Below are positions 6,301-63,636 of a stretch of DNA of 64,000 nt, piece after piece (the first letter of the stretch is position 1; every line of letters begins with the position of its first letter). A program made the position numbers and the translations under genes. The stretch is from Antechinus flavipes (lineage: Eukaryota), in assembly GCF_016432865.1 (NCBI RefSeq), contig NC_067399.1, positions 514,104,001 to 514,168,000 on the forward strand, read 5' to 3'. The notes under the pieces are model-generated. The model did not search any database. It was not told where the DNA came from and saw only the letters and a list, made by a program, of their open reading frames with translations.

Positions 6301-9300
6301 ATACATTCATTCATTCATGTATGGATGCACAAACGCACACCAATACAGCTATGCATACATACATATCCACACACCCACAGACATACAGATACACAGAGAG
6401 CAGGGAATACACAAGGTACAACTTCCTCCCTCCCCTCCATCCCTTGGGGATTGAGGATCAGGGTTGGTTCCTAGGGAGTTGGGGGAAAGCACAGCAGTTG
6501 TGTAATAGGGAGTGGGGAGGGCAGGAGGAAGGGAGAAGGCAACACTGAGGCTGCCTCGGCTGAACAGAGGTAGGAATACAGCTCCCATGGGGGCCTTGGG
6601 CAGAAGCAGTAAAATGCCCAGACTGAGACAGATGGGAGAAGAGCCAGAAATATCATATCCTGCCCCCTTCCATGCTCTTCTCTTCCCCCCACCCCCTGCT
6701 CCAATCTACCCTGAAATACCAGCAGATTTGTAACTCCACCACTTCCCCTCCTATCTGCCTCTTCTTGGATCCCTCTCATTATCTTCTGTCAAATTTGCAA
6801 ACTTCCTAAAGCTAAATAAATGGCAATGATTATTGTTCTGACTAGTACAGCCCAGTGGATACAACGCTCAATTCAGAGTTGAGAAGAGCTGAATTCAAAT
6901 CCTGAATCAAACACTTATTACCTGGATGCCCCTGAGCAAGACACTTAACATTTCAGCCTCAGTTTCCCCACTTATTTGGGACTTATTTCTTTGATGTTTG
7001 CAAACCAATAAAGTGCTATAGAGATGTCTTTTTTCTTTTTCTTCCCTGAAGCAGTAATTAGAGAAGGTATGGGCTTTGCTGTGTTTTGGGGGAAGGCCAG
7101 AATCCTGGTTGGGAGTCTCTGGGGATGGATGACATCAGAGAATAGGGGTATAGTAGGGGGTGGTATCAGTGGGGTATCAGGGCTGGAATCAGAGTTGGAG
7201 AAGGCAGATCGGGGTGGAAATTTGTTGGAGATGGAATAAGAACTCAGAGTAAGAATCAGAAGATTCGAGCCATGCTTCTGGTGGTGAAACTAAGGGTGGA
7301 TACAAAAGCCTCTGTTGGACAGCTGCACCACCGCTGCTGTTACCATCAGGGTTTCGCTAGCAACCTTGGGATTCCTCCAGAATCAGGAATCGGTTCTCTT
7401 TTCGTCCCTGACACTTCCCGTCTCCTCCCCCAACACCCGTCTCATCTCCACCAACTACCCTGGGGGACCCTTGCTCTCCCTTACCAAGTTCGGTGGCCAA
7501 CACAGTGAGATTGTGCCAGGCTCGAGCTTCCCGATCTAGAGGCACAGATGTCCGGATGGTGCCGTCCTCAGGCTCAATGGAGAAGCAGCGCTCGGGGTCT
7601 GAGTGGGGGAGGATGGAGTATCTGGAGAGAGGTATCAGGATTAGTGGCTGAGGATGGAGCAGGAACTACCTGGAGGAAGGTTCCAGAGCTCATCTAATAA
7701 CTGACCTCCTACTGGGCTTTGTATTTTTGTCCTTTCCTTACAACTTTGAGTTGGTAGGCTAAGTATTAGGATCAAAGACTTAGAGCCAGAAGGAAATATA
7801 GAAGCCAAAACTTCTGTATTTTACAGAGAAAGCTTAGGCCCAGAGAGATTAAACTGACTTGTTCAAGGTCATATTAGTAGTTAAATGAGACAGTCAGGAT
7901 TTGAACCCAATCCCCCAATTCCAAACAGCCTGGTTTCTACCATGCTAAATTAAGCCATTCTATGGAGGGGAAACCAGAATACAGAGAAGTTAAGTAAATT
8001 GCCCCTGGTGCCCAGGGAATGAAAAAAGAAGCAATGATGTTTCCACAATACCATGGGTACTAGGGCTTGGAGTATCTCAATGCCAGTCTCCTAGGTTAAT
8101 TCTCATAGCTGCATTTGGCAAAAAATTGAGCTCTTTGGAATCAGGGCCAGCTTCACTAGTAGAATCCACCTGGCATAATTTCTGGAGACCCAGGAAGGCC
8201 CCTTTGCTTTAAATTATCTCCTCACATGTATTCTGATGGAAGTGGATTTCTATGACAAAGAGACCTAACTGAGTTTCAAAACAGCTACACCCAAAGAAGG
8301 AACACTGGGAAATTTTCTTCCCGAGTTATTTTTACCTTCTGAATCCAATTCTCCCTGTGCAACAGGAGAACTGTTTGGTTCTGCAAATATGTATTGTATC
8401 TAGGATATACTGCAACATATTTAACATATATAGGACTGCTTGCCATCTTGGGGGGGGTGGAGGGAGGGAGGGGAAAAAAACGAAACATAAACGAGTGCAA
8501 GGGATAATGTTGTAAAAAATTACCCTGGCATGGATTCTGTCAATACAAAGTTATTATTAAATAAAATAAAATTAAAAAATAAATAAATAAATTATCTCCT
8601 CACTGGAGGATCATTTTGACTGAAATTAGTCCTCTTTGGTTAAGCCACCTGCCCAGATTCACCTCTGGGAGGGAGAACAGAATAAATTGTGAACAGTCAG
8701 TAATACCTTAGGAGGAATCAGTTGATCAGATCCTCAGAATAAGAATAAATAAGTTTATCAGATTTTGAGACTTCAGTATCTATGGGAAATGGAAGAAATG
8801 GAGGTACAGAGAATGAGCTTTACCTGGGAAGACAGGACTGAGTAGGGTGTTATGGTGTGGATTGGGAGGAAAAGGAACAAGAGATGGAGGAGAAAAACAA
8901 ACTTTCCTGTGTCTACAGTTTTGCTGAAGGTGGGGTCCCGCTCCTAGAGTCAGTGTCTCTGTCCAAAAAAGAGATCCAGAGGGACAGGGAAGTCTATCTA
9001 CAGACTCCCCCAAGTCTGGTCTGTTCTTGTGCTCATACAGTCCTTAGTACTTAGGACTGGGGGAGTAGGTCCTGAGGGAGTTCAACCATTGGTTTCTCCT
9101 GTTAATAGCATTGGGGAAAATGGATGCTTGTAGGGAAAGGGCTGAAAGGAAACTGAAGGAGATGAAAGTCTGGGAAGCTATTGGAGAGGGATAGGTCAGG
9201 AATTGAGAAGTTAAAGAAGGCCAAAGACTAAAGGGGATGCAGGGAGAAGCAGGGGCTAAGGGGATATGGGGTGGGGGGAAGAACAGGCATAGAAGTAGAA

Positions 9301-12107
9301 AGTCTTTAAATTCTGATATTAAATGACTCTGAGAAGCAAATGAGAGTGGGTTTTGAGCTGTGATTCGCCTTTGAATATGATAGGGCTGTGTTCCCCTGAG
9401 GCTCACCTGATGGGGCTGGCGGGTGAGTCGAGGTCCATAGCAGAGACACGGCCCACCAGGGTGCCAGGGGCACTGTTCTCAGGCACGGCCAAATGGTAGG
9501 TGGAGTGGGTAAAAACAGGTGGTTCTGGAGCATCCTGGACTGCCACACGGACAGAAGCCACGTCCTTGAAGGGCCCACGACGCAGGTAGGCTGGATCTAT
9601 GAGTGTATTTGTGGCCTCTACTCGGAAGGCATAGGATCTACGGCTCTCAAAATCCAAGGGCTAGGAGTAGGAGAAATCAGGTTTGTAGAGGCTGAGGTGG
9701 CACCCTGGAGCCCATTGTATCCCTCCTAAACTGGATAGACTGCTGTGTCCTGGGCCTGGAATGCTGGCCATGTCTGGTTTGGTGATACAGTTCCCTTCCC
9801 TAGAAAGAATGGGAGCCCTAAGATCTGGGAAGCCTCTGGGGATCCATTAAAGCAGGAGGAAAAATGATTCAATTAGAAGCATATAGATGCTTACAAGGCA
9901 GGGATCCCCCAAAAAAAGTATAGGTGGGTGTGCATCTGGGGCAAGGTCTCAGAATGGGGAGCACAGAAGGTGGGTATTGGCTTGAAGTGGAGAAAGAGTG
10001 TGTCAGGTGGGCACCTTGCGAATGGTGAGGAGCCCATCTTGGCCTTGGGCATCAGTGCTGATACTGAAAGTCTCAGCTCCCTCCCCATCCAGGATGCTGT
10101 ACGCCATGAGGGCATTGTCTCCCAGATCAGGGTCTTGGGCTCGAAGTCTGCCCACTAAGGCCCCTGGTCCTGCAGTTTCCACCACCGAGAATTGGTATAG
10201 GCCTTTGAAGAAAAGGAGGAAGAGACTCAGAACAGCCCCTTCTCCTTTCCCAGATATTCCCATTTCCTAGAAGAAGTAGAAAGAGGACCCTGGGAGAATT
10301 CCTCATTCCTCTTGCTTCCATTTCCCTAGAAAGCTCCCCCGAGTGTCTCTCTTTACTCTGGTTTGTAGGGAACCATAGAGATGAGCAGAAGGCTTCCCCA
10401 GGGCTACCTTCCCCACTCTCAGGAGAAGTGGCCTGAGGGGAATGATTCAGAGTGTGAGGGAAATATAGACAGAGAGGCTAAACAGTAGAAGTCCAGGCCT
10501 AGTCAGATAAAAGCCTCCAAGAGCTAGCAGACTCTGGTAGTCCAGAGAAGAGGACAAGGAGGGATTAGAGTTGGTGCCCTTACTTTGAGGGAATTTGGGG
10601 GGGTTGTCATTGACGTCGCTGAGAGTGACAGTGACTGTGGTGCTGCCCGACAGCCCCCCCATGTGGCCACCCATATCCTTGGCCTGAATCACCACCAGGA
10701 ACACTTCCTGCGTTTCCCGGTCCATGTTGGGGATTGCGGTCCGGACCACTCCTGAAAGGAGAAGGGTGTGATACTAAGTTAAGGACAGGAAGGGGCGTTT
10801 TTCTGATCCCCATCCTCACCCCTTCATCAGGCCTCCTTTAGAGCCTTCCCCTCTGCTGCTTCCAAACCTCACCAGTCTGAGGGTCCACAGAGAAGAAAGG
10901 CAGCCCATCCAGCACCGTGTACACCAACTTGGCACTGTTCCCATAGCTAGGATCATCGGCGTCTTGAGCTGTCACCTGAATCACTGATGTCCCTGCCAGG
11001 GAGTCTCCTGTCACCCCCAGCTCATAAGGGAGGGAAGGAGGGGGGGTCAGGAGGGAGGGAAGTGATGGGACGGGAAAGGCTCTAGGAGGATGAGAAGATG
11101 GTTTGGTCAAGTGGCCATGGAGCATGTGTGGACTGATGGCCTGGGATGGGAGGAAGGGAGGCAGTGCCCTGAAGGGAGGAGAGAGCCCTGAGCACATGGA
11201 GTGTGGAAGGGAGTATCCTAGAAGAGGGGAGGACATATTTTAGGATGGTCTGGAGGAATGGGATGAGTCTGGTTTGGGTCTGGAGACTATATAAGTTGGG
11301 AGTGTATAGCTTGCTACTGGAGAGGCTTGAGGGGGAGAGAAGTCCGGCTTATGCCATAGGAAAACTGGGGTGGGTGAAAGCAAGGCTTCCTCACCAACAT
11401 TGGACATCTCTGGCACAGTGGCATGATAGGGCCCGAGGGGGAAGACTGGTGGGTTATCATTGATGTCTTGCACTTTAATGATGAACTCAGATGGTGGCTC
11501 TAAGGGCCGGTTGGAGGCTCTGTCCACAGCCTGGGCCAGGAGCACATACTGGGCCTTTTCCTCCCTGTCCAGACTCTTGGTGACGTGAATGTTGCCAGTA
11601 GCCTCATCAATCACAAACACAGTACCTGCTCCCTCTCCTGTCAACAGGTATTTGGTTCGACCCTCACCACGATCCACATCTGAGTGAAGCTGTAGAGGAC
11701 ATGGAGTTAGGGGTCAGATATGAGGAAGCCACGGAGCCGAGAGAGAGCACAGCAAGGGGAATGGACACAGGGGATCAGAAGGCCCATGCTTGGCGACAAA
11801 GGTCTTGACCAAGGTAAGGGAAGGAAGTGACATGGGTCAAGCTAGGAAGGAGGGTCAAATGGTCGGGAAATATGAGAATGTTTTGAGGGGTGGGAATAGT
11901 TCTTACTCTGCCAATGAGGACAGGTTCAGGGCCAGCATACTCCTCGATGACGAAGAACTGGTTCCAGACCCAGCTCCTTCTTGCCCGAAGCAGTGTAGGC
12001 CCCTGGCCCTCCCTGATCCCAGCCCATGCTTGGGCTGGGGCTACCAGCCTCCCTGCACAACCCCAGCTCCCCAGCCAGGCCAGCATCAGCCGCACAAAGA
12101 CCCACAT
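3392..12107 (-). CDS. CDH24: Cadherin-24 (type II classical cadherin), 11 coding exons, 781 aa
   Basis: Manually spliced exons (all GT-AG): 12107-11907, 11689-11395, 10992-10873, 10751-10584, 10202-10015, 9660-9407, 7621-7485, 5323-5202, 5117-5006, 4324-4076, 3891-3392. Total 2346 nt = 781 aa + TGA. Signal peptide [13 protein letters not shown], prodomain cleavage RARR|SWVWNQF, DRE/DxNDN calcium motifs, TM segment [23 protein letters not shown], catenin-binding tail ending [13 protein letters not shown]. Confidence 0.98.
6845..7015 (+). mobile_element. MIR/MAR1-type CORE-SINE
   Basis: CAGTGGATA...GAATTCAAATCCTG...GCAAGACACTTAAC...CCTCAGTTTCC core. Similar copies near 840-960, 1655-1800, 7770-7910, 26275-26440, 35390-35520, 38940-39100, 40715-40905, 46690-46890. 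Confidence 0.65.
8226..8588 (+). mobile_element. 5'-truncated marsupial LINE-1 3' end
   Basis: A-rich tail; perfect 15-bp TSD AAATTATCTCCTCAC at 8211-8225 and 8589-8603; same family at 28646 and about 32600. Confidence 0.8.
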
Positions 12108-13499
12108 GCTTTGAACCTGGTTCTAGTGTTGGCTCAGCCCAAGCTCTACTCACTGACCCACCAGCCCTCTCCCCACGGTGATGCCGTCCATGAGGTAGGT
12201 GGGGCCAGCAGGACAGGTGTGTGGGGGCTACCCCATTAGTCCAAACCTGCAGAAAAGGAATTGGTCAGCAAGAGGGAAGAGCAAGATGCCCTCAAATCCC
12301 CCAAACTGGGCACACTGTTAACCATTCCCCAATATCCTTATTAGTGGATTCAGTACTAAGAAAATAAATTAAGGGTCTGGGGAGAAGAGAACAGATAGAT
12401 CAAGAGAGGCTCAAATTGGAAGGGATAGTAGGGGAAGAAACAGGAGAAGAATCCCTACACCTCCGTGATTTATTCACATTCCTAGCCCTCCCCATCCTTC
12501 CCACCTGCACTATCCCTATATTCACCTCTGGCCCTCCAAGTTGCCAAATTTCTGGTCAGTCACAGTGCAGCAGGAGAGCTGGAGAGAAAAGAGAAAAATG
12601 GGGGAAAAGGTCAGAATGTGGGGAAGATCTGAGAACTCCTCAGTCTGAGTTCTCTTCCTCTCCCCCAGCTTGCCCCTTTCCAACACGGGGTGACCTAGAC
12701 GCTGTGACTAGGATCTCTGCCTTGGGAGCCTGAGGAGGAGGGGCTGAAGAAAAGGGCTTGAGCAAACTGGCCAGGCTTAAGAGGGGCTTGGTTCGAGGGG
12801 GTGTGGCTTAAGAAAGTCTGAGGGAGGGGGTGAGGTGCGAAGGGGGGAGGGAAGTGAAGCAAAATCCCTGGGGTGTGGGAATGTAGAGAAGGTAAGGCCT
12901 AAAATAAGAGGTGACCCCTGACACCGATTACTGAGGCCCCATTGCTCTAGATCCTGCCCCATTCCCCATGTGAAAGGCACTGCTGGGTTCAGTCAGTCCG
13001 CACCGCAGTGACACCCCTTGGAGCTAAGCAAGGGGACTAGTGGGGAGTAAAGCAAAGCCGGGGGGCCAGGGCTGGGAAAGGAGGGGAATGGGGAAGCAAG
13101 AATCCATTGGGAGAGACATAAAGATAAGTGAGGGAGGAAGGGAGATGGAAGAAAAACGGGAATACGAATGATAGTAGTGGTAAGAGACAGTGACTGAAAG
13201 GCAGAGATAGAGATACAGAAAAAGCACAGATACTGAGAGCTGGACCCCGATGAAGAAACTGCAGGTAGTGGTGACTGGGGAGATCCCCAAGAGCCAGGGG
13301 TCAGATCAGGACAAGAGGGAACTTCAGAGTCTAGAGAAATGGAAGGCTAAATCGGGGAAGGACAGAAGAGGAAGAGGAGCCCCAATCCTATTCTACTCTA
13401 TCCGCCCCCCCTCCTAGGGGAACACCCCAGGTAGCACCCTGCTCCTGCCCCTCCTTCTCACCAAGATCCAGACACCTGACAGCCTGTCCATCCAGTGGG

Positions 13500-31000: not shown

Positions 31001-34000
31001 TCAAACCTAGATGTTTTTGAACAATTCTGAAGAGTAAAATATACTTAAATTCTCAAAAAAAAAATTTCTGGCTTCATATAAACATTGCTATTTCTTTATA
31101 CTTATTTCATAATCTTAATAAGACTGATTAGGTCCTGAATTTAGAAGCACAACTCCCTGCTGCCTCTTAACAAAAATGGCTGGTTGTGACATCCATCACC
31201 GTTTTCAGTTGTCCTGTTTTCAGTACCACTTCCCACACTTCTTTGTGGAATGCTGGTAGTAGCTACTAGCACAGTAAAAACAACCTAGACCATGTCCAGA
31301 TAAAATTTTGCCTCTACAGTTGATACAGTGAAAAGAACATTTGGATATGTAATCCAAAAGTTCAGGAAAGCAAATCCTAGCTCATTCTTCCTTCCTATTA
31401 TAACCTTGAACAAATAACTCATGTACTAAAATCCTTAATATCCTCTTCTGTAAAAGAAGGGGGCTGAACTAGCCGACTTCTAGAAACCCGTCCAGTACTA
31501 GATTCTTATGAATTAGGGGAATAACAAGATTACACCCTCAATTTCCAGTTATTCATGAGACTCCAATTCAAAGGTGTGACTTACACAGTGTGCTGGCTGC
31601 TTCCTGGAGCTGGCTGTTGAAGGGTCTGCACCTCTGGGGCTTGGGTCTCTATGATGGTAGGTGCTTCTGCCTCTTCAACTTCAGACTTTTTGGGACTTCC
31701 CTGTCAAAAAGCAAGAAAAAACAAAAATACCACATAGTTTAGAAAGTTAACTTTGTATTTCCTTTATTACAATGTTCTCCATATATTAAGTGCTGAACAG
31801 AAGTTTACCTGGATCTGATGAGCACATTCTGCCCTGGTAGCTCAATATACCCAACGTCTAGCTATCCTACACCACATCATCATTTCATTTCAGAAGTGGG
31901 TCACTAAGTGGAACATGGCTTAAGGAACTTGGACAATTTCTACAACAGCATCTTATAGGAGGTTTTCATTAGCTGAGCAGAAAGCTCAGAGTTCTGAATT
32001 TCAATTCTGCTCTAAAGCCGAAAGGCAGGCTACTTTTGGTCACAGAAGGCGATGTGATTTTGCCAGTTAGGCATTAGAGTCTGTTAACTTTTGTGAGCTA
32101 AAGAAGGCCGAAATACACTAATTCTATATATACCCAAGAAAGACCATAATAGATAAGGAGTCCTTTCTACATTCCAGTCAGTACCAAGATGAGATGAGAA
32201 CAACTCACATAGCTCAAGAGAGCAACAAATCCATGAGTTCTGCTGAATGAAGGACAGATTGTTTTTATCTTGTGAAATTCTATATGAGATAGCTAAGCTC
32301 TAAAAGATGAGCAATATAATCCAATTGCTTTATCAAGTCTACTTTAAAGTTACTTAAATGACAACCTAATATGTTTCAAGAACACTGAAATTATACCTAC
32401 TGTTCTTTCTTTCATTTCCTTCACAAGCTCCTAACCCTGTCTTTCCCCTCTTTTTCCTCTCTCATGCAAGTCCAAAAATTCAATAGGAGGATCCACTCTA
32501 CTCCAGTTCAATTCAGGTACAGGCAGCATGGCTTACAGAAAGAATACTGGACTTAAAGAGTTAAAAATAGTAGATTCATAGCTACACTCAATGAAGAACA
32601 CTGGTAATGAGTGTGGACTGCTTGCATTTTTGTTTTTCTTTCCAGGTTATTTTTACCTTTCTAAATCCGATTTTTCTTGTGCAACAAGAAAACTGTATAA
32701 ATATGTACACATGTATTGTATTTAAGCTATACTTTAACATGTTTATTTAACATGTATGAGATTGCCTGCCATCTAAGAGAGGGGGTGGAGGGAAGAAAGG
32801 GAAAAGCTGTAACAGAAGTGATTGCAAGGGTCAATGTTGAAAAATTATCCATGCATATGTTCTTGTCAATAAAAAGCTATAATAATTAAAAAAAAAAAAG
32901 AATATTAAGTTCAAATTCCAGCTCTGTGATATTTAAGGTTTGTGTGACTTTGAGCAAGGCACACACTCTCAGCCTCAGTACTTTGTTTTTTTAAATAATA
33001 ATACTCACAATATCTACTCTCACAATGTTGTGAAGAAAATGCTTTGTGAATCCTAAAATACTACATAATTGTTAAGTTAAAAGACAGGTAGTGATCATCT
33101 CTTGCCCACTGGTAAGGAAGTACCATAGCCTACCCGCTCTGGCTTCAACCTTTGGGTCTTATGCTTCTCAACTGGTTCAGCCTGGCTCACAACCCTCACT
33201 GGGGCAAAGGCTGGAGAGACGGTAGTCCTCTCTTTTGGTTCAAGGACCTGCTGCTGTGGCACTGACGGACTGCTGAGAGGTGCAATCTCCTGCCCAGGAG
33301 AGGGATCTTTGGTGTGAGAGTAGCTGGTGCTGCTATCCCTGGAAACTCCAGGGCTCCGAGACTGAGAAAATCAGAGTGGGGAACATCATAAGAACACAAG
33401 TGTTTGGTTCTAGTAAGGTATTCTCTAGTTTTCCACTTCCTATTTATTCAGCTTAATAAAGGGATCCTCAAAACTTGTTCTGTCTCAGCTCAAATTTAAG
33501 CTAATAACTTATAATTAAAATAGTTCAATCCCCAATGGTAGTCTATGTATTTTTAATCTGACTACCTCAAGTTCTTTTTAACTTGTTCTTTTTAGTGTTA
33601 GAATTATTAACTTCTTTGATTCAATAGTCAGCAATGCTCTAGAATTCTCAAACTTGCTTTAGACTGGAAGATGGAATCAGACTCAGTTAGATAGGGGTTC
33701 TGAATGAAAAAGGAACCCACCCAGGTGTAAATTATAGGATAGGAAATTTAAAGTGAATTCTAAAGCAAAATGCAAAGTGAGAAATAGGAATAGGCTGGAT
33801 GCTGAAAGAGAATATATATAAAGTCAGGGATGTAAATAATGTTGATATAAAAAAACAAGTAACATAAGGTATATAAATGGAAACTACTCACTTTTCTACT
33901 ATTGCTAGATGCTGAACGAGATCGAGAACGAGAACGGGACCTAGACTCTGATGTTGATCTGGAGCCTACTTGGGTTCCTGAACGGGGGTTGGAACAAGAG

Positions 34001-37000
34001 CGTGACCAAGATGAATCCCTCTGCTTGGATCTGGGAGGTGAGCGGGATCTAGAGCCTGAGCTGTCTGGAGAGCGGGATCTTGATCGGGAGGTGGAGGAAG
34101 ATGATGAAGATTGGCTGGAGGGGGATGAATCAGCTGAACGTTTTGTCCTGTGGCTTGATAGAGGGATAGGAGAGTCTCCTTTGCTTTCCTTCTGAACCAA
34201 AGATGGGGGCTGTTCAGAGGGAACCTCAGTGTTTACCTTGCCTAGGTTTGATTCCTCAGCTCTTAGAGCAATCAGTGGAGCAGAACGTTCTGGCTCACTT
34301 TGAAAAGCCTCCTCACCTGGGGGTGCAATCACTGTGCTTGTTTCAATTGGAAGAAGGGAATTTCCCTCTTGTGCTATCTCTGTTGGAGACTTTGCTTTGG
34401 TGCCTGCAGGGCTTGGCAAGGAAGGCAGCCTTCCTCCCACCTGGACAGTGTGTGGGGGTAAAAGTAATTCTTTGGCCTCAGCCTCTTCACAGGGAGGAGA
34501 CCTCTGGGTAAGGTCAGGAGGGGCTGGGCCTTCCAAGAGCTCTGTCTCTTCCCCAGTGGGGGGCTCACTTGGAGCTGGTGGAGTGGATGCTTCCTTGGTC
34601 AGCAGGGGTGGGGGACTCTCTTCCTCATTGGCAACTTGTTCTGGTTGTGGCCTAAGGGAAACCTTCAGTAGATCTTCAGTCAGTCGAGGTGGGGAAGGAG
34701 ATTTTTGTTTTTCTTCTGGGGATTTTGTAGCTTTTACTTCTCTTTCTCCTTCATCCTCTTCCTTTTCTTCCACTTTAACTTCTGGTGCTTTTACATCTTT
34801 CTCTTGCTGCAATCTGGTTAGCTGACAAGTTTCCACTTCTTGCTGAGCCCTTGTTGTTCTTCCTCCTCCCTCCAGCTCTTCCTGCTCCTGGATTTCTGTG
34901 CTTCTAGTTACTCCCTCAATTATCTCCTGAAATGCTGCTCTGGTTTCCTCTTTTTCCTCTTGAAACTGTTTCAAAACTGGCAGCTCAACAACTTTTTGCA
35001 TTTCTTCCTCCTCCTCCTCCTCCTCCTCCTCTTCATCTTCTTCCTCTTCTTCCTCCTCTTCGTCTTCGTCTTCCTCTGTTTTCACATTTCGATCTGCTCT
35101 GGCTCTCAGATTTCTGGAAGGTGTCTCCCGTTCCTCCTCTTCCTCAGGAGCCTGGCTACTTTCAGAAAGCTTGGCTGCTCTTGCCTAAAATAAAAATTAA
35201 AAAAAAAAAATACACATAATAAGTAGAGATGTTGGCTCTACATATGCTTACTAACAGTTCTAGGGAAGGGGGAAAAAAGAAATCTAGAAAGGCACCCTGG
35301 AGGAGAAACTTAAGACATTAAATACTATAGAAAGAGATGGCAATGCTAAACAATTTCCTTAAAAAAAAAAAAATCTTGTTTTTGTTTAAAGACAGCATGG
35401 CATAGTGGATAAGTTAAGCTTTGAGTCAGGAAGTTCAAAGTTGAGTTAAATCTTGCCTCAGACATGTACTAGATTTTATGATCCTGAGAAAGTCATTTAA
35501 CTTTAATGTCCGAAGTGGCTCTCTTAAAATTATAAAGTTATAGAGAAAGTGCTTACCTGTACTAATACAGTAATTTACTTATTGATAGCTCCCTACTAAT
35601 GAAATAGTAGGCCCAAATTTAAAAACTGTTTAATTTATATATCTTATTTTTACATAAATTTCATTTTTAACTACAGTCCTTCCTGTCAAGCTATTTTTTC
35701 TAATACCAGACATTTTAATTAAATATGTGTTACAATCATAATTCTAAAGACTGCAAAGGTAGTAGTGCAATGTTAGAGGTTACAATTAGCTAGTATTTAC
35801 AAAAGTTACTATTAACTTTTCTAATTAGGAGCTGTTTTGGCAATATTGACAATTTGGGTGACATCATAAATAAATTAGGAGAGCATGGAAGAAATTATCT
35901 ATCTGATCAATAGATAAGGGAAAAGTTCATAACTAAATAGAAAACAAAGGATAGTGGGGATAAAAAGGGGAATTTTGATTATGTGGAAATAAAAGCTTTT
36001 TGCACAAACGAAACCAATGCAGCCAAAATTAGAAGGAAAGTTAGAAACTGGGGGAAAATTTAATAGTAAATTTCTTAGATAAAAGTCCTCATTTCTCTAA
36101 CATATGGGGAACTAAGCCAAATTTATAAAAATGAGAGCCATTCCTCAATTGATAAATGGTCAAAGGGTATGAACAGGGAGTTTTTAGAATAAGACATCAA
36201 AGTAATTCAATTATAAGAAAAAACTGAAAATAAATAATATGAAAACTATTCTAAATCAATTACAAAACTACAAATTGAAACAATTCTGAGGTACCACCTC
36301 ATACGTATCAGACTGACTAAAAATACAGGAAAAAATGACAAATGTTGAAAGGAAAATAGGGACACAGTTGCACTGATGATATAGTTGTGAACTAGTCTAA
36401 CCATTATGAAGAACAATTTAGAACTGTGCCCAATAGGCTATAAAAATAAATATATCCTTTGACNNNNNNNNNNNNNNNNNNNNNNNNNNNNNNNNNNNNN
36501 NNNNNNNNNNNNNNNNNNNNNNNNNNNNNNNNNNNNNNNNNNNNNNNNNNNNNNNNNNNNNNNNNNNNNNNNNNNNNNNNNNNNNNNNNNNNNNNNNNNN
36601 NAAAATACTTATAGCAACTTTTTTGTGGTGGCAAAAAACTGGAAACTGAGATGTCCTCATCTGAGGACAATGGCTGACTAAGCTGTGATATATGATAAGG
36701 AGGATGTTTCAGAAAAACCTGGAAGACGTATGAGCTGATGCAGAGTGCAGTACGCAGAACTAGGAGAATGTTGTACATAGTAATAGTAATATTGCAAAGA
36801 TCAATTGTAAGACTTAGCTAATTCCAATCATTACAATGATCCATGACAATTCTAATTTATAATGAAAAATGCTATCTAACTCCAAAGAACTGATAAACTC
36901 TAAGACTGAAGCATATTTTTTACATTTTCTTCCAGTGGAAATATTTTGCATGACTTTGTATGTATAATGAAAAAGTTTTAGAGTTTTGCTATAGTTTTAG

Positions 37001-52000: not shown

Positions 52001-52191
52001 CGTCTCTACCGGGTCCGCTCCCCTCCGACGCCCCTGCGACGCAGTCTCCTTACCCCTTTGAGCCGCTTGACCAGAGCACTCTTCTGTCCACTCTTGGCCA
52101 GGCCTCGCTGTTCTAATGCGGCCTTCAGGTCGGTCACCCGCAGCGCCTGAAGCGGCTTCCCGTCCAGAGTCACCTCCTCCAGCTCCGCCAT
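16021..52191 (-). CDS. ACIN1: Apoptotic chromatin condensation inducer 1 (Acinus-L), 1248 aa if exon 4 is skipped
   Basis: Exons: 52191-52054, 50456-50391, 48344-48233, [47638-47519, contains TAG], 38660-38572, 35184-33892, 33361-33134, 31700-31585, 23417-23276, 19582-19540, 18782-18649, 18556-18404, 18092-17951, 17859-17714, 17563-17456, 17334-17227, 16996-16672, 16569-16469, 16323-16021 (TAG). Without exon 4: 3747 nt, open. SAP domain ([18 protein letters not shown]), RRM ([13 protein letters not shown]...), caspase-3 site DELD across exons 16/17, RSB motif [24 protein letters not shown] tail. Confidence 0.97.
25200..25780 (-). promoter_or_regulatory. Internal ACIN1 promoter region for short isoforms
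   Basis: Locally GC/CpG-rich island within the AT-rich intron 8; contains the S' exon and further strong donors TGA|GTGAGT (about 25635) and AAA|GTAAGC (about 25746). Confidence 0.65.
25282..25405 (-). other. ACIN1: Alternative first exon of short Acinus (S' type), ATG 25405 to donor 25282
   Basis: Translates [33 protein letters not shown], matching the human Acinus-S' N-terminus as I recall it; donor GCC|GTGAGG. Confidence 0.85.
27618..27809. mobile_element. 192-bp hAT MITE of the same family, opposite orientation to the 48030 copy
   Basis: TIRs CAGGCGTCCTCAAACT / AGTCTGAGGACCCCTG; interior is the reverse complement of the 48030 copy; TSD imperfect (ATATAGTT / ATATAGTA). Confidence 0.85.
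28646..28879 (+). mobile_element. 5'-truncated LINE-1 3' end, same family as 8226
   Basis: Aligns by eye with 8330-8560; poly-A tail; TSD AAC/TTTGCTTAAATGA with one mismatch (28631-28645, 28880-28894). Confidence 0.8.
32600..32899 (+). mobile_element. LINE-1 3' end (more diverged relative) inserted into a MIR-type SINE
   Basis: Shared motifs GTTATTTTTACC...GTGCAACAAGAAAACTG...GTCAATAAAAAGCT plus poly-A; SINE halves on both sides; 5' edge approximate. Confidence 0.7.
35850..36970 (+). mobile_element. Old LINE-1 fragment (ORF2 C-terminus and 3' UTR), spans an N gap
   Basis: L1-like segments such as ATAAATGGTCAAAGGGTATGAACAG and CTGAGGTACCACCTCATAC; boundaries approximate. Confidence 0.65.
36990..38050 (+). 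mobile_element. LINE-2 fragments
   Basis: L2-like pyrimidine-rich segments and a 3'-end motif near 38000-38050; boundaries approximate. Confidence 0.5.
43245..43620 (-). mobile_element. LINE-1 3' end, antisense
   Basis: Poly-T at the left edge followed by reverse-complement marsupial L1 3' UTR-like sequence. Confidence 0.65.
44610..45740 (+). mobile_element. Old LINE-1 ORF2/3' UTR fragments
   Basis: L1-like segments CTGGCAGAAATTAGGTTTAGACC and CTATCAGATTGGCAAAGATG; boundaries approximate. Confidence 0.65.
47519..47638 (-). pseudogene. ACIN1: ACIN1 exon 4 homologue with in-frame stop (decayed or poison cassette exon, 120 nt)
   Basis: Reads [14 protein letters not shown] (human EASAESEDEMIHPEG); TAG at 47627-47625; acceptor TTTGTAG intact; donor CTA|GTATCT weak. 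Confidence 0.8.
48030..48220. mobile_element. 191-bp hAT MITE, OposCharlie1 (OC1)-like
   Basis: TIRs CAGGGATCCTCAAACT / AGTTTGAGGACCCCTG; perfect 8-bp TSD ATCTAAGG at 48022-48029 and 48221-48228. Confidence 0.88.
48640..48910 (-). mobile_element. Possible ERV solo-LTR fragment
   Basis: Begins TGTTGAGA; non-intron-like composition; antisense AATAAA (CTTTATTG). Family not identified. Confidence 0.35.
49560..49880 (-). mobile_element. LINE-2 fragment
   Basis: CTACTATGTGCTAAGCACT...GGGGATACAAA is the reverse complement of an L2 3' end. Confidence 0.55.
50704..50763. repeat. (CAAAAA)n hexanucleotide microsatellite
   Basis: Direct reading of the sequence. Confidence 0.85.
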
Positions 52192-52800
52192 CTTGTGTGA
52201 GGTACTCGGCTCCCGTCTCGACGGCTTCGGGCATCTTCGGTAATTTCCGCCAACGCCCTTCGAACGTGCCGATCCGACCCCGCCCACTGCCACGGCCAAC
52301 CCTTTCCCCTCCCTGTACGATCCGAACGTTCAGCCTTTTCGAGAGCATTCGGGTATTTCCGTCCCTATTTTAGCACCAATCAGCGGCTTCCATTCTTTCC
52401 ATAGGCTACGCCCCTCGCGACTCCTCTCAGATTTCGGACATCTCCGCCCTACCGAATTTAGGACTAGTTTTCATTTGTAAACAGTGGCAGCACAGGATTC
52501 GGAGACCCTCGGCTTTCTTCGGCTCCTCTGCTTTGGAGATACTGTCCGACTTCCTGGTGCCGAAGCGCTTGGGAAGGGGGTTCGGGTCCTTGTATGAGGT
52601 CCGGAAGTGCGTGGGTTGCCCAGTGGGGTTTGCTGGGAACTTGGAGATAGCTGAGGTAGCCGGAGCTCACGGACTTCTGTGACTTCCTTCTGAGGTCCCT
52701 CGGGGTGAGAATCGAGAGGTAAGCTAGGAGGTCAACTCTCCTTCGGACCAGCTTACCTTTTATTTGGGCTTTGGGGTCTATGTGCCCCACCCCACCCCAG
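51700..52800. promoter_or_regulatory. Bidirectional CpG-island promoter of ACIN1 (minus) and C14orf119 (plus)
   Basis: CpG-dense; YY1 motif CCGCCATCTT 52185-52194 overlapping the ACIN1 ATG; CCAAT 52376-52380; ETS motif CCGGAAGT 52601-52608; candidate C14orf119 exon 1 donor GAG|GTAAGC at 52718/52719. Confidence 0.85.
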
Positions 52801-54360: not shown

Positions 54361-54780
54361 ATGTCATTGAAATCACCTGCTGCTTGGATAACACCATCCT
54401 CCTCCTCTACTTTATCCACTACTCCAGACAATTATTCCTTCTTCTCCATGTCTTACTTCACTTCACAGGAGATGAAGTGTGTTCTGCATTGGTTTGCCAA
54501 CTGGTCAGATCCCCAGCGTGAACGTTTCCTGCAGGACTTGGTAGCTAAGGCAGTGCCAGGCAAATTACAGCCCCTCTTAGAGGGATTGGAACAGCTTAGT
54601 GTGTCTGGAGCAGACCGACCACCACACATTTTTGATTGCCAGCTTCGACTCTGGGATCAGTGGTTCCGAAGTTGGGCTGAAGAAGAACGCAATGAGTTTG
54701 TCAGACAACTGGAGGCCAGTGAGCCAGACTTTGTAGCAAAGTTCTATCAAGCAGTGGCTGCTACAGCTGGTAAGGACTAA
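54361..54780 (+). CDS. C14orf119: C14orf119 orthologue, 139 aa, single coding exon
   Basis: Contains SQEMKCVLHWFANWSDPQRERFLQDLVAKAVP...FYQAVAATAGKD, matching human C14orf119; acceptor TTTTACTCTCAG|G one base before the ATG; position head-to-head with ACIN1 as in human. Confidence 0.96.
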   Translation: MSLKSPAAWITPSSSSTLSTTPDNYSFFSMSYFTSQEMKCVLHWFANWSDPQRERFLQDLVAKAVPGKLQPLLEGLEQLSVSGADRPPHIFDCQLRLWDQWFRSWAEEERNEFVRQLEASEPDFVAKFYQAVAATAGKD

Positions 54781-56208
54781 GAGAAGTCAATATTGTGAAA
54801 AACAGTATGTGACTCTTAAGGAGTTGAGTTGAGAGCTTTGATGTGGGAATGCCTAGATGTGAAGGAAATGTCTGGGATGCACCCATGTCTGTTTTCAGAA
54901 TTATTGTTGTTGGACGCCTAGCCTGTGGATCACAACAGGTTTAAAAAAAAAGCCAAACCTCATTATTAGCTATTCCGTTTCCTTCACATTGTCCTAAAAT
55001 TCCTAAAACTCTGTCATCCTGACTTTCTTTGAAAGCTTTGAAAAGAAGCCTGACATCAGAAAAAGGTCTCCCTAAAATTGGTCCACCAGAGGGGGTAAAG
55101 AATGGAGGAGTAAATGGAACTCCTGAGAAGGGAGCAAGCAATGGACAATAAGTTACCAGGTGGGCTTCAAAAAGCTTAGCTAAATCTAGACCAATGATCT
55201 ACTGTACCCTATCTGGTTTGGTTTATAAGCGAAATGTTGGGGTATCAATGGGTCAATCAAATGGAGGGATAGAACAGATGATTACATGCCAAACTTAAGG
55301 AGCTTTGGTTCTTGTCAAATGTCTATGATATTTTTGGAGTCAGTAACAAAAGTTCTTATCTCAAAACTTTGCTCTATGAAGATTAAGAAAACAAAAGTTA
55401 TGTCCTATGGGATGGAAGGCTTATTTTTATAATTCAAGAAATATGAGGTTCTGGGAATACAAAGACCAAAAATGGCCTTTGCCCATAATGAGCATACAGA
55501 TACTTGTACAAGAATAAAAGGATGATCTTGTTTAGTTTAAATGACTTCTTTTTTTCCCTCTAGGACTGCCTTGGGCAAGTAGAAATTTGGAATTATAAAT
55601 ATAATCCATCTTCATCCTCTTAGTAGTTCCTCCTACTTTTATGAAGTCTTCATTCCTGATTTAGGGTTTTACCCATTTTTTCCCTTCTATCTGAATGAAA
55701 ATATGAATTGTGATCCATTGTTAGCTTTTTTCCTCCCTACCAGTCTGTGGCCAAGGAAAGGCATTCTTGTTGCTCTAGGTTGATCCAGAACCCTGGTAGA
55801 GTGCTCAAAGATAAGTTCAAACTCATATCTGGAAAGATATTAAGTGCCTATTGTGTTTCAGGAATGCTTCTAAGCATTTGGGAATGTAAAAATTAAATTA
55901 TAAGTCCAAAAGTCCAAGCCCTCGAGAAACTTAGATTCTTTGGGAGTGGAAAGGATGTAACATACAAAGTCAGTAGCGGCCAAACACTAATAGGGACAGA
56001 AAAAGCTGCTTCTAAGAGATGGCATTGAATTGAACCTTCAAGGGACCTAGGGTCATTAGACAAACGAGAAGAACATTGTAGGCATAGATTACAACTTGTG
56101 AAAAAAATAGAGAAATATAGGATATATCACATGGGGCTGAAAAAGTGAAATTGGAGACAAATTGTAAATGTTAGACATACTCTGTCCTAGACCCAATATA
56201 ATGTCACA

Positions 56209-59200
56209 TTATGCTTCTCCCATTCCCTCAGAGAGGCTTCTTATTGATCCTGGGAATTCTGATGAAGGATAAGAAGCTGACGGTGCGACTCGAAGGGAAG
56301 CTTGGTATTTCCTGTAGGCCATAGTTCCCCCTGTACCTACCAGAATAAGTAGAATGAGACTGAGGCCTATGGGCAGAATTATACCTGGATTTGGGGAAAT
56401 GAGACCTGTTGAGGTCAGCCACCTAGATATAAAGAAGGAATACTTAATGATTATTTTTTTTTTTTAAGGAATTTTCATTGTATCCCCTGAAATTCTAGGG
56501 ATACCTCTTTACCCCCAACCTAAGTTATCATCTTCACATAGAAGAGTTTCTAAAGTAAGGGAAGAGAAAACTAGATTATAGAAGACTTTAAGTGTCCTTT
56601 CCAAGTCTTATGTAGCAGCAACTAAATTCATATCATTTCAGGAAACTTCAGTAGCAGGAAAGAGGCCTACCCTAACCTATGTTGGTGGATTTTGAGGTGA
56701 GACAGGACCACTGATCCCAAAAGCAGAATTTAATAGAAAAGGATCCTGGATGATAACGTTGGAAAAAATGGGACTTTGATTCCTTCATCTTGGAAATAGA
56801 GAAGTTCTGTAATTTCACCTGATTAGCAAAAGGTAATCACTGTTGATCAGGGGCCATGTCTTTGGATAAGATTTTATATTTTTATAACATAAGGCTATGT
56901 GGGTGTTAAATGCTACTCCTGTCATTAGGGCTTAGAAGTGCCAAAGCGTATATGTTGGAATGGCTCCTTACCTATTATAGTCTGTGGTAAAAGTGGCTTC
57001 ACCATAGTCCACATTTAATGGTGTGTCATTGAGAGATCGGCTCAGAGCTTTATATAGGATCTCAATTGGGGAACCTTGACATCCAGGAAACTCCCACATG
57101 TGCACAGTAAACACCAGGTTAGAGTTTATTGAGGGACTGTGGAAATGGCACCTGAATTGACATTACAAGAAAGATAGAATAGATGAAAGAGTTTCATTTT
57201 TTCCTCATATTTAAAATGTGTAAATCTCTTGAAGAATAAATTTTAGATTTAGGCATTTAGAAAACTGGGTGTTGAAAAACAAATATAGCCTCTTTGGAGA
57301 AGGGATATAGTAGTTAGAACCTGGGACCCTTTCAATCCTTACTTAGACATAATATGAGTTAAATATTTACATGTGGATGCCTGCTCTGATCACCAGGGCC
57401 TGCAGTATAGCTTGGATCAGTTCCTGATGCTGCATCTTACTCAGGTAATAGTTTGTGGGCCCAGTAAGTCCTAGGGGCAACCGGATCAGCAATCCTGGGG
57501 ATGAAGGTCTTGTAGTTGAGAGACTAAGAGACATGAAATCCTTATCTGCCTGGCAGAACTGGACCCGGGGACAGAAGAGGAGGCCATAATACCCAGGGAC
57601 CTGGAAGGAGAAATAAAGATACAGCTAACGGATTCAACTACATATTTCTCATATTCTCAACTATTCCAGATAAAGGGGTCTAATTTAGAAAAGAACCATT
57701 TTTGTGATCCCTTTATAAATAATGAATGTCTTTAAGAGATTATTCCCAATTCTTTTTTTACTATACCCACCTGGGTATAGTATATTCACCTGAATAGACT
57801 TTCCTGGGAGACATAGGACCCATGGTGATCCTGCTGCCTGCACATAGTATGTACTTCCTTTGGTGCATCGATGTAAGTAGCATCGAGGGAGGAATGTGGT
57901 TCCATTTCTGAATACCCGGACTGAAGTGAGGTTAGCCATGAAGCATCGGCTTTTGGGATGGTAGATCTCCCCATGTGGATTTTCTGCTGTAAGGAGGAGT
58001 GCATTTTCCTTCTTCCAGCATTCACTCTGAAGAGGGCCAAGAGAGGGGAAAGTTTGTGCTTCAGTCCTGTATGTGCCTCAGTCCTGACATGCTCAAATAA
58101 AACTGACCTTACCTTATGCTTCCCAGGCTACTTACTTGATGTGTTAATGGTTTGTACATTCGGCAGCCATCCAGCAGAGAATCCGATGAGCACTGTCCTT
58201 TGTCAAAATGCAGGTAGTGACAGCCCAGTCCACTGTGGAAAAGGACAAGGAGTGAGACTTAAGGTCAAAGGCAAACCTCTTGTCCACCATTGTCTGAATG
58301 CAGTGCACATACCTGCCGACACAGAAGAATTCTGAGGAGCCAGATTTACAGGATGTCACCAAACCAAAGTTCAAACCAGATCCTGTTTAGAGGATTGAAA
58401 AGGAAGTTGGAAAAAGGCCATAACATTCCCATCTTCTCCTATTACTATTATTAAATTTGGGATTAAAATATTTGTGCTATGTATTTCAGGGTTGTGAGTC
58501 AAGCACAAATTGTACCTGAAAAGTGTTCCCTTTCCTCTAGGATCTTGACTCATACTTAATGACATCCCTCTTCTTGATTACCTGTAGAATATATGATCTC
58601 TTATTCCTTACCCTGACCCCAGAGCAGTTCCTGTGCAGCACTGAGATTTACTTGATACCAGCCAGAGTCAGCAAAGGCAGCAAGAGTGATAAGGTCAATC
58701 TGAGTACGGTGAGCACCATCAAAGGTAGCAGTCATCACAGATCCCTGGAATAAACGAGCTTCCCAGTGAGAGGAAAATAGCCCCTGCAAATGAGAAAGTA
58801 TCAGAGAATGTTCAGATTATCACTTGTAGCTTGGTCTTCCTTCTACACCTCTTTTACTCTAGCCTCTGCTCTCACCTCTTCTTCTAAGGGGACTCCCTGT
58901 ATGGCTTCTGAAACTCCCAAGTGCCTGGCTAGGCTGTGGCTTACAGTGGGGGTGATGAGAATCAGCTGCCCCCATTCATCTCTTCTGGTCACTTGTCGTC
59001 TTGGGGAACATTTATCTCCAACTGGTGAGCAGGGTAGGAGTGAAGAAAAAGAAAGGGTAGAAAAGGTGGATTTTTGGGAAGAAGAGGCACATGAAAGAAA
59101 TAAGAGTTTGAGAGAGCTATATATGCTTGCCACTGGTTGAGATTGCAGGAGTCCTCTAGCCTTTTCCCCTTACTCACTGCTCGAACCTGCTGTACAGTCC

Positions 59201-61649
59201 CTCCATTTCTTGAAGAGTTGTCCAGAGAAGCCCAGAACATGGAACAGTTCATGTATTGTAACCTGAAGAAGGAAAGAACAAGAAGAAAGGGGTAGTGCGA
59301 CTGGACTGAAAGACCCAAGTCCTCTTTTTCTACTTCCCAGTTGCCAAGTCTTAGTCTATCCCACAAAGGTAAAAGTCTTACTTCCCCCTCAGATAAGTGA
59401 TCCTGGTTCTGCCCTTCCTGCCCCCCATTTAGTCACCATGACAATGTCACTGTGGCTATGGTGAAGGCTGCTAAGGTGGTGTGTGCAGAAGGTGATGGCT
59501 CCTGCAAGGGGCCGATCTTGGCTGTCCAGCTGGCAGCAAGCAGCATAGGCAATAATGGAAGGCTGGAAATAAAAGAACATGGAGGCAGTGATGGGAAGCA
59601 CAGCAATGTTACACACAATGAGGGAGCTGGGTGATTAGGAGATTCAGATAGGGAGCTATAGAATAGGGAGAAAGACAATTCGATTTACCCCTCACCTCAT
59701 GGTGGCATTTCAGAGTATGAGCAACTTGTACATACAAGAGGAAGTCAGTATTTGAGATTCCGGGTCCATCTGGTTGGATCAATTCTGGGGGACCTTGTTC
59801 TGGCCATAAGGAATATCCACGGAGATGGGAATCAGGAATCTGGAGAGAATGGAATATAGGAACAGGCCTAAATTGGGAAACAGGTAAGTAGGAGAGAGAT
59901 CAGTAATTTGGGGGCCAGGAAGTTAAAATCAGAGAAGAGAAGGAACTGGATTTGGGAGTACAAAATAAGTTTTTTTTTTTTTTGCTCTGCTATTTCAAAT
60001 ATTAAGCACTTGCTATGCCATAGATCTCTGCTTACAAAAAGGGGCAAAAGAAAATATTTGCCCTCAAGGAGTTTACAATCCAATGGAAACAAACCTGTAC
60101 AAAGCAAACTATAACATAAATAGGAAATAGAGGAAAGGTGCTGGAATTAATGGAATTGAGAAAGGCTTTTTGTAGAAGGTTTAGTTAGGGTTGGGGAGAT
60201 GGGGTGTTAGTAGTCAGGACAGAGAAAAGAGAGGTCCCAGACATAGAGGAAAGCCAGAGAAAATGCCCCGGGAGCTGGGGAGATGGAGTGGCTTGGCCAG
60301 GAGGCCAGTGTTACTGGACCAAAATATGTATCAGGGAGTAAAGTGTAAAAAGACTGGAAAAGTAGTGGGAGCCTCAGGTTATAAAAGGGCTTTGAATGCC
60401 AAACATATTTTATCCTTCAAGCAATAGGAAACCATTGGAGTTTATTAAGTAGTAGACATGATTGGACCTGTGTTTTAGGAAAATCACTTTAAAAACTGAA
60501 TGGAAGATGGATTGGAATCAGGAGAGATTTGAGGCAAGCAGAACCACCAGCAGGCTATTACAACAATCCAGGCATGTAGTAATGAGGGCCTGTACCAGGG
60601 CGGTATTAGTGTAAGAAGAGAGAAAGCATATTTGAGAGATGTTGCCAAGGTGAAATCGACAGGCCTTAGCAACAGATTGGATGTGGAGAGTGAAGAGTCC
60701 AGAATGATTAATAGATTGCCAGCCTGAGGGACTGAGAGGGTTCCTCTGAACAGTAACAGGGAAGTTGGGGAAGGGATTAGGGAGGGAATAATACTCATGT
60801 TACTACTAGGCCTTAGTTTCTTCATCTGCAAAATGAAAGTTAGACTTCAATGATCTCAAAAAGTTGCACTAGCTCTAAATCTATACGTTGATCAGAGATT
60901 CAATGGTTGATAAAAAGTCACTTACCTTTACCCCCATGCAGTTCTCTCCCACATAGCTGGGGTTCAGAAGGCTGCATCTGTCAAGAGAATCTTTCTGGAA
61001 TGAGCTAGAGAAATATGGGGTTTTAGGAAAATAATTTTTCCTATCTTCTTGATAGCTTGCACTCACCTGTAGTGATTTGGGGAGTCTGGGTCCCTCCAGA
61101 TAGCTTGACAGTACCGCTCTGGGTCACGACTCAGAAGAAGGGATCCTTGCACGGGTGGGACTGGGGAGATAGAAGTCAATTAGCCTTTTCTGTAACAGGT
61201 TAGGATCCCTAGTCTTTCTGAGTCTCTCTTCCTCAGAGATTCATTGCAATTCAATTGCAATTCTTTTCTATCCCCTTACCTGCAAGTACCCCCTGGATCC
61301 GATGAATGGCTTCTCTCAGAACTGCATCTATCTGAAATTCCCAGTTCTTCCAGTCTCTCTCAGGGTACAAAATCTCACTTTTTAAATTTGATTCCTTAGA
61401 GTACCAGGCCTGGATACGAATAGGCCTTGGAGCATTGGAATGGTCAAGAGAACCAGAACCAGAGCGTGGCTCAAGGGACAATGGGGAAACAGGTGGTCCA
61501 ATAAGACTCACAGATCTCTGTGTTTCCTCATGTAGACAGCGGCCCTTAGTTCCCTTCAGAAACAGTAGCAAATGCAGGAGTAGCAGAGAATTTCTCTGTC
61601 GGGAGTATAGTCTTCCCCAGAAAAGCTCCTCACAACCTGCTGTAGGCAT
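56209..61649 (-). CDS. CIROP: Ciliated left-right organizer metallopeptidase (leishmanolysin-like peptidase 2, M8 family), 14 coding exons, 738 aa from ATG 61649
   Basis: Exons (all GT-AG, phases compatible): 61649-61280, 61160-61067, 60977-60926, 59839-59696, 59562-59437, 59262-59178, 59021-58876, 58783-58612, 58382-58313, 58232-58136, 58026-57790, 57600-57371, 57151-56972, 56422-56209 (TAA). Total 2217 nt with no internal stop. HELFH zinc motif 59253-59239, SSHWE third ligand, SVMTA Met-turn, C-terminal TM IILPIGLSLILLILVGTGGTMAY. Syntenic next to C14orf119. Confidence 0.93.
59990..60740 (-). mobile_element. LINE-2 fragment in CIROP intron 3
   Basis: Purine-rich antisense L2-like sequence starting ATTAAGCACTTGCTATGCC. 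Confidence 0.6.
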
Positions 61650-63636
61650 TGGTCTTCCTACCCAGCTTCCTAGCTCAGCTCACAAACAGGGTTACTCATT
61701 CTCTTCTCTCCCCTTCCTTTTATTTCCTTTCTAGTTATTGACAAGAAGTTGACAAACTTTTTTTAAATGTAAAGTTTGGGAAGAAGGAAGCCTCTTTCTC
61801 AGGGGACTAGGAATGGAAAGGTTGGGGGTAGGGAGGCAATTTTTCCGGAAGCCTCAGCTGAGCTTAGTAAAAGAGGTCATGCTGATTACAGCTCAGAACC
61901 TCCTGGGTGGTAACTGCTGTGGCTAGGTGTTGAAGAAACTAAGGGTGTCAAACTCAAATAGAAACTGGGGCTACTAAACCATATACAAGCATCCTTGCTG
62001 GCAGCAGTGACTCGGTTTTAAAGTGCAATTTTCTTATTTCATTGCATTTTTATTTGTTAATTATTTTAGTCTGGTTCATCAGCAGCCTAGAGTATTATGG
62101 AACCTTTTTTTGGAGGAAATCTTTTGGACTATACAATAGCTGGATAAATCATGCTCTCAAAGCCCAGAGAACTGGGAAGAGGAGTGAGAAAGTAATATGG
62201 GAATAGAGAAGCACAACAACTGGACCCCACAACTCTCCTGGTCCAATTCAATCTTCAAATCAGGATGAGTTATTTGCTTTCCCTACCTCAAACCTTTTTC
62301 TTTGGGGAGAGTCTTTAAAGGCCATATTAAAGAATCTCGGCAGCTATTGAGTCCAAAGTACATTTGAACAGTTTGTCTTCTTTGAGATAATACAGCATAG
62401 TGTTATCCAACTTTGACTTGAAGACCTTAGTGAGTAGTGAGTGCTCTAATTGTATTTTTTTTTCTTAACATCAAACCTAAATTCTGCAACTTCTACTCCA
62501 TGTTTCTAATTCTGTCTATCTGCTTCCATGTGACAGCTCTTCAGATACTTGGAGCTAGTAAGCTATCATATCCTCTCTAAATTCTTTACTCCAGGCTAAA
62601 CATTTCTAGTTCTTTCAAACTCCCTATGTAAAATAAAAGTCTCCAGCCCTCCTGGTTTGACCTCTGAAGGCTTTCTAGCTTAATAATAGCCTGTCCAAAT
62701 CATGATGCCCAGAACTGAACAAAGTATTTCACATGCAGCCTGACCAGAGCAGAGAACAGGGTGGTCCTCTGCCCTTCCTAGTACTTATCCCACCTCTCTT
62801 ACTGTATCATAACTTTGAATCACTTTCTTAACCAATACATCACATTGCTGAACCATATTGAGCATATAGTCAGCAATTCCATTTCATAAAACATGTCCAT
62901 GACTTCTAGCCCCACGTCTGTCATATACCTGTTGTATGTACGGGGGAGGTTGCTTAACTCTTGAGTTCTGTCCCCTCTCCTGTCTCTTTTTTTGTGATCT
63001 TTGTGTAAACTGCCGACTGCCGACCAGTTGCTGACTTATATTGGTAAAGAGAATTTCCTCACCAGGAGATCCCAACACAATTGAAAACATAGGTGGAAAA
63101 AAAATTGTGTGTGTGTGTTTATGTATGTGTGAGTGAACACATACACAAGTACTTACATTCTACTCAGGGATGTAATCATATAAATAAATGCAAAGTTTAT
63201 CCAAAAGTTCAAGCCTTACAGTCTTCCTTAAACTCGTGGAGAGAGGTGGAAGGTGTTTTAACATAATTGAGACATGGTTAGGAGGCTGATTCAACGAGCC
63301 CAGAATAGACCTCATACAGTCATTGGGGATTTAGGACAAGTAAATTGGTCAAGTGTTCCATATTTTATTCACACCTTTTTTATGAAGTTCTCTGACTAAT
63401 CTGCAAGGTCTCTTCTCTGAATTATATTGCCTTTCTAGTGTATCCTGCACCGGTGGGCAATTGATTGCATCCTGCCTGGAGTTGTTTTTAAACCTCTTCA
63501 GGAGAGAGCGTGGTATATAGTATACTAAACAAGAGACTTGGAGTCAGAGGCCCAGGTGTTCAATTTCACAAATAGTTTCCCTACTTGAGATGACCTACAT
63601 TCTATTGGGGAAAAGCAACAAGTATATATATAAAAA

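Follow-up and report, generated by a model that had tools for sequence, protein, structure and literature searches.

Does the 64,000-nucleotide stretch of Antechinus flavipes DNA analysed here (contig NC_067399.1, positions 514,104,001 to 514,168,000; hereafter the window) carry a working copy of CIROP, and what may such a copy say about the left-right organiser of marsupials? CIROP, the ciliated left-right organizer metallopeptidase, was formerly called LMLN2, and an initial annotation made from the letters of the window had described an intact copy at 56209-61649. We hold with high confidence that this gene is a functional CIROP/LMLN2 orthologue, which encodes a 738-amino-acid (aa) type I membrane M8 zinc metalloprotease of a marsupial closest to Sminthopsis crassicaudata among the species compared. 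It is an ordinary orthologue and not a discovery.

We found that the gene runs from 61649 down to 56209 in 14 exons, with every intron bounded by GT-AG and with compatible phases throughout. The spliced coding sequence comprises 2217 nt, i.e., 738 codons and a TAA stop, and has no internal stops; rebuilt independently from the sequence, the model is identical to the one first proposed. In-frame stops lie 5′ of the ATG at 61649. Exon 1 (61280..61649, 370 nt; like all the exons, on the minus strand) holds this ATG, a signal-peptide-like N-terminus and the start of the propeptide, and ends with the donor CAG/GTAAGG. This ATG has an aligned counterpart in each of the five other marsupials considered in this work and is the start of the NCBI models in Sminthopsis, Gracilinanus, Monodelphis and Dromiciops, while the Trichosurus model begins downstream. 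Exon 2 (61067..61160, 94 nt, phase 1) is flanked by AG/GT sites and has the same length in the five other marsupials. It is followed by the 52-nt exon 3 (60926..60977, phase 2), where the junction reads NHY-R-CSLLNP and the acceptor was taken from the orthologue alignment; an acceptor further upstream was ruled out by this alignment, which sets the true start of the exon at 60977.

The catalytic core is spread over exons 4 to 8. Exons 4 (59696..59839, 144 nt) and 5 (59437..59562, 126 nt) are both in phase 0, and the latter matches positions 179-210 of the Pfam Peptidase_M8 profile. Exon 6 (59178..59262, 85 nt) carries the HELFH zinc-binding motif and matches profile positions 218-237, exon 7 (58876..59021) has 146 nt and is in phase 1, and exon 8 (58612..58783, 172 nt; profile positions 289-339) contributes both the third zinc histidine, within SSHWE, and the GSVMTA Met-turn. 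Exon 9 (58313..58382, 70 nt, phase 1) leads to the cysteine-rich C-terminal domain encoded by exon 10 (58136..58232, 97 nt, phase 2) and exon 11 (57790..58026, 237 nt; profile positions 437-499). The junctions of exons 12 and 13 were settled by listing the candidate splice sites near them and then by orthologue alignment. Exon 12 (57371..57600, 230 nt) encodes a fast-evolving linker and ends at 57371 with the weak donor CACAT/GTAAAT; an internal GTAAGA donor at 57441, tried as its end, breaks the frame at exon 13 and is excluded by the alignment. The membrane-proximal stalk is encoded by exon 13 (56972..57151, 180 nt, phase 2), and exon 14 (56209..56422, 214 nt) provides a transmembrane helix, a short cytoplasmic tail and the TAA stop. 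The C-terminal tail can be aligned with the tails of the Trichosurus, cat and horse proteins.

The family of the encoded protein is evident already from the stop-free segments of the minus strand, which carry the leishmanolysin hallmarks VTIHELFHVLGFSGQLFKKWRDC and SSHWEARLFQGSVMTATF and a hydrophobic C-terminal segment. The Pfam scan was run exon by exon, not on the whole spliced protein, and the matches to PF01457 (Peptidase_M8) on exons 5, 6, 8 and 11 follow one another in profile order; exon 8 by itself reaches 30.7 bits, where the cut-off is 21 (E=1.8e-7). The same domain is present in all the CIROP orthologues found. Scanning the exons with NCBIfam returned nothing meaningful, as expected of a library whose models are of bacterial and archaeal proteins. 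By its profile match together with the HExxH motif, the third zinc histidine and the Met-turn, the product is a member of the M8 (leishmanolysin) metzincins. The only solved relative detected by sequence, with the Trichosurus orthologue as query, is leishmanolysin GP63 (PDB 1LML, E=1.2e-10). The two share the M8 metzincin family and an alignable catalytic region; in contrast, GP63 is a very distant protozoan surface protease with which only about 210 residues align.

All the features that had been read from the letters (HELFH, the zinc histidine of SSHWE, the Met-turn and the membrane-spanning tail) are found in the spliced translation, where HELFH occupies residues 266-270, SSHWE residues 343-347 (His345) and GSVMTA residues 353-358 (Met356). 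The cysteine scaffold claimed in the initial annotation is likewise complete, with 22 of 22 invariant CIROP cysteines kept. Aligned with 34 non-marsupial vertebrate CIROP proteins, the window protein retains 133 of 136 near-invariant columns, and the three exceptions (L169M, G499P and L546F) are conservative and common to other marsupials. H266, E267, H270 and H345 are invariant in all 34 proteins and M356 is common to 31 of them; the Phe of HELFH recurs in five, HELLH being the commoner form. Judged by hydrophobicity, the N-terminus (SLLLLHLLLFL) resembles a signal peptide, and one strongly hydrophobic 19-mer at residues 682-700, with a Kyte-Doolittle mean of 2.36, forms the strongest peak in the protein. 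The protein is thus predicted to be laid out as a signal peptide, a propeptide, a catalytic domain with the HExxH...H site and Met-turn, a cysteine-rich C-domain, a variable linker, a transmembrane helix and a short tail. It agrees with the Cirop scheme, which is given in papers citing Szenker-Ravi et al. (2022) as a signal peptide, a propeptide, a catalytic domain and a transmembrane domain at the C-terminus.

Is this M8 peptidase CIROP itself or its paralogue LMLN (invadolysin), or yet another member of the family? An exhaustive search with exon 8 returned first the dunnart (Sminthopsis) protein at 98% identity and then other vertebrate proteins. The top matches, from Sminthopsis, Gracilinanus, Trichosurus, Monodelphis, Dromiciops, platypus, echidna and many eutherians, are named CIROP or 'leishmanolysin-like peptidase 2', and some bear the older database name 'leishmanolysin-like peptidase', which is what could be said for a paralogue. 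However, in the maximum-likelihood tree the window protein falls within the vertebrate CIROP clade, and the support is full: SH-aLRT values are 100 each for the grouping of the window with Sminthopsis, for marsupials, for mammals and for the vertebrate CIROP clade. This tree, obtained by a quick search on a set that holds no named vertebrate LMLN sequences, agrees with the species tree. Also the exon-for-exon projection, which reproduces the RefSeq opossum CIROP exactly, and the synteny with ACIN1 and C14orf119, matched by the adjacency of Acin1 and Cirop in mouse, speak against a paralogue, and we regard the chance that the gene is LMLN or a different M8 peptidase as negligible. The assignment to CIROP (LMLN2) made at the outset is therefore backed by database names, tree, synteny and exon projection alike.

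The 14 window exons were projected onto the corresponding loci of five other marsupials. Intact 14-exon open reading frames (ORFs) were recovered in Sminthopsis crassicaudata, Gracilinanus agilis and Trichosurus vulpecula. In Monodelphis domestica the translation equals RefSeq XP_007479870.1 (738 aa) residue for residue, and in Dromiciops gliroides it equals XP_043836420.1 (746 aa) in the same way. At each of the five loci all 14 exons occur in colinear order between AG/GT sites, with a single terminal stop and length differences that are all multiples of 3. Since the translations in Monodelphis and Dromiciops match RefSeq exactly, the exon model has independent confirmation, which extends to the weak donor of exon 12. 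CIROP is thus intact in all six marsupials, which represent four orders, and the inactivating lesions in sister species by which the initial annotation could have been overturned are absent from the five examined.

The nearest relative of the window protein is that of Sminthopsis, with 93% identity, a synonymous divergence (dS) of 0.135 and all 14 genomic exon lengths identical. Monodelphis CIROP shares with it the length, the 14 exons, the splice sites, the catalytic motifs and the transmembrane tail, but differs at the level of sequence (78% amino-acid identity) and by three in-frame length changes that cancel out, exons 1 and 14 of opossum each being shorter by 6 nt and exon 11 longer by 12 nt. 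Eutherian CIROP proteins are more distant, at about 60-63% identity with the dunnart orthologue as query. Like the window protein, the eutherian, frog and fish proteins possess a signal peptide, a propeptide, an HExxH...H catalytic domain, a Met-turn and a transmembrane domain at the C-terminus, and ACIN1 is a common neighbour; the window protein differs from them by having HELFH in place of the commoner HELLH and a longer N-terminal region before the hydrophobic core. Exon 11 of the window falls 36 nt short of that of Trichosurus and Dromiciops, and 12 nt short of that of didelphids. This in-frame shortening, which Sminthopsis shares with the window species, is placed immediately ahead of the conserved RCYLHRC; the Gly that is otherwise invariant has become Pro (G499P).

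Whether the intact frame is also a maintained one was addressed through the ratio of non-synonymous to synonymous substitution rates (dN/dS, Nei-Gojobori). Over all 15 pairs of the six marsupials it ranges from 0.22 to 0.36, and in the six pairs tested by bootstrap the upper 95% limits are at most 0.36; for the window against Sminthopsis it is 0.24, with 53.5 non-synonymous versus 64.5 synonymous changes. Purifying selection on CIROP is clear in the four marsupial orders sampled, and the values near 1 that would have undermined the claim of constraint were not obtained. Regional values, taken from comparisons of the window with Sminthopsis, Trichosurus and Gracilinanus, are lowest in the catalytic core of exons 4-8 (0.07-0.14) and reach 0.28-0.34 in the stalk, transmembrane helix and tail of exons 13-14. 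For the exon 12 linker dN/dS is 1.53 against Sminthopsis and 0.99 against Trichosurus, i.e., around 1 within Australidelphia, versus 0.07-0.46 for the gene outside it. The linker resembles a stalk that is under weak constraint and possibly disordered.

Several observations weigh against a functional, organiser-related CIROP. The donor of exon 12 is weak, and a stronger out-of-frame donor, GTAAGA, lies 70 nt upstream within the exon. The 1.5 kb that follow the CIROP stop (54700-56208, minus strand) contain neither AATAAA nor ATTAAA. Both NCBI dunnart isoforms are aberrant, showing intron retention, exon skipping and donor read-through, which implies that the transcripts sampled there may be poorly spliced. 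Finally, the organiser role is transferred from other species. Taken at their strongest, the weak donor with its internal competitor and the want of a canonical poly(A) signal nearby could indicate a copy that only looks intact, being silent or recently inactivated, for instance after loss of its promoter or through a splicing defect at the exon 12 donor. Against this stand the same weak donor, kept in all six marsupials and used by RefSeq models (that of the opossum among them), the dN/dS of 0.24 between the window and Sminthopsis, and some 480 bp of upstream sequence conserved across marsupials, so that we consider a silenced copy very improbable. That upstream region (61650..62130, minus strand), delimited in the six-marsupial alignment, is a putative promoter and 5′ untranslated region. 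It includes an invariant TGTTTGTCAAC, a forkhead-like core, at about 61749-61759 on the minus strand, roughly 100 nt before the ATG; a strict search for RFX X-boxes 5′ of the ATG gave no match.

The aberrant models nevertheless raise the question of a second product. Of the two dunnart isoforms, XP_074150359.1 (X1) retains intron 5 and XP_074150361.1 (X2) skips exons 4-5, and both end by read-through of the exon 12 donor, so that they lack the stalk and the transmembrane helix. Reading through this donor yields ATG TAA, an immediate stop. It is conceivable, though we would bet heavily against it, that marsupial CIROP exists both as a membrane form and as a conserved soluble isoform generated by intron 12 retention (..CAC AT/G TAA). 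If true, a shed or secreted CIROP would alter the way in which the protease could act in organiser fluid. Among the other NCBI models, that of Gracilinanus is devoid of exon 14 and that of Trichosurus of exon 1. Despite these incomplete models, the Sminthopsis, Gracilinanus and Trichosurus genomes each encode the full 14-exon ORF.

As for the genetic context, CIROP is convergent to an intact single-exon ORF of 139 aa on the plus strand (54361-54780), which is C14orf119-like (DUF4508) and is positioned between CIROP and the first exon of ACIN1; the 3′ end of CIROP would extend toward this gene. The SAP-domain first exon of ACIN1 (about 52009-52329) and a large acidic ACIN1 exon (33763-35184) are both on the minus strand of the window, as are cadherin-repeat exons of a CDH24-like gene (about 3400-12200), which gives the order CDH24-ACIN1-C14orf119-CIROP for the window. 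We observed the order CIROP-DUF4508-ACIN1 at three other marsupial loci, those of Sminthopsis, Gracilinanus and Trichosurus, and a mouse study places Cdh24 next to an Acin1/Cirop fragment, Acin1 and Cirop being adjacent. In a sequencing-run index, 18 small runs of one coded organism each contain about 0.17-0.23 of the words sampled from 56209-61649. These runs come from several studies, some of them labelled metatranscriptomic, and the shared words could be an intronic repeat or part of a transcript.

How much of this is new? CIROP is already known, as RefSeq names the gene in Monodelphis, Dromiciops, Trichosurus, Gracilinanus, Sminthopsis and both monotremes, and holds it at full length in Monodelphis and Dromiciops. 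The description of the gene as hidden stands for a prokaryote-style ORF track only and otherwise falls, since five marsupials have it under its name in the RefSeq annotation. None of the database matches was a protein encoded by the window itself, hence the gene may be unannotated in the window's own assembly. What is added is the corrected annotation of CIROP in dasyurids, Gracilinanus and Trichosurus, including the point that dasyurids encode the full 14-exon, 738-aa membrane-anchored form though the NCBI dunnart models are truncated. This is an annotation correction and not a biological surprise, and beyond annotation the finding matters little.

What, then, may marsupial CIROP do? According to papers citing Szenker-Ravi et al. 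(2022), on the basis of work in frog, fish, mouse and human, Cirop localizes to the cilia of left-right-organiser sensor cells, where it functions downstream of flow and of Mmp21 but upstream of the repression of dand5. The same accounts describe a five-gene module of CIROP, DAND5, MMP21, PKD1L1 and C1orf127 that has been lost in reptiles, birds and even-toed ungulates, all of which lack motile organiser cilia. By analogy, the marsupial protein would sit on the cilia of organiser sensor cells and act after leftward flow and MMP21, before the repression of DAND5. Purifying selection shows that the gene has some function without telling which, and intron 12 retention, with its immediate stop, would give a product that lacks the transmembrane helix, as the NCBI dunnart models do; both leave room for a CIROP that is intact and constrained but serves mainly another purpose in marsupials, for example in other ciliated or secretory tissue. 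Yet the phenotypes and expression that those accounts report for the species studied concern chiefly the left-right organiser, the gene is described as lost exactly where motile organiser cilia were lost, and CIROP is kept by both monotremes and eutherians, which bracket the marsupials. We therefore regard a mainly different function as unlikely; were it true, the presence of CIROP would be uninformative about a flow-based organiser.

Literature searches found no marsupial node data. The bracketing by monotremes and eutherians predicts that marsupials retain CIROP, and their retention of it agrees with the published accounts, which restrict the loss to sauropsids and cetartiodactyls. The suggestion made at the outset, that the lineage has such an organiser driven by flow or that CIROP has some other constrained function, is a reasonable one. 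That retention suggests a cilia- and flow-based organiser in marsupials and, by analogy with the species studied, they probably keep one. For testing ciliary flow at the marsupial node, the gene model described here provides a clean probe and target.

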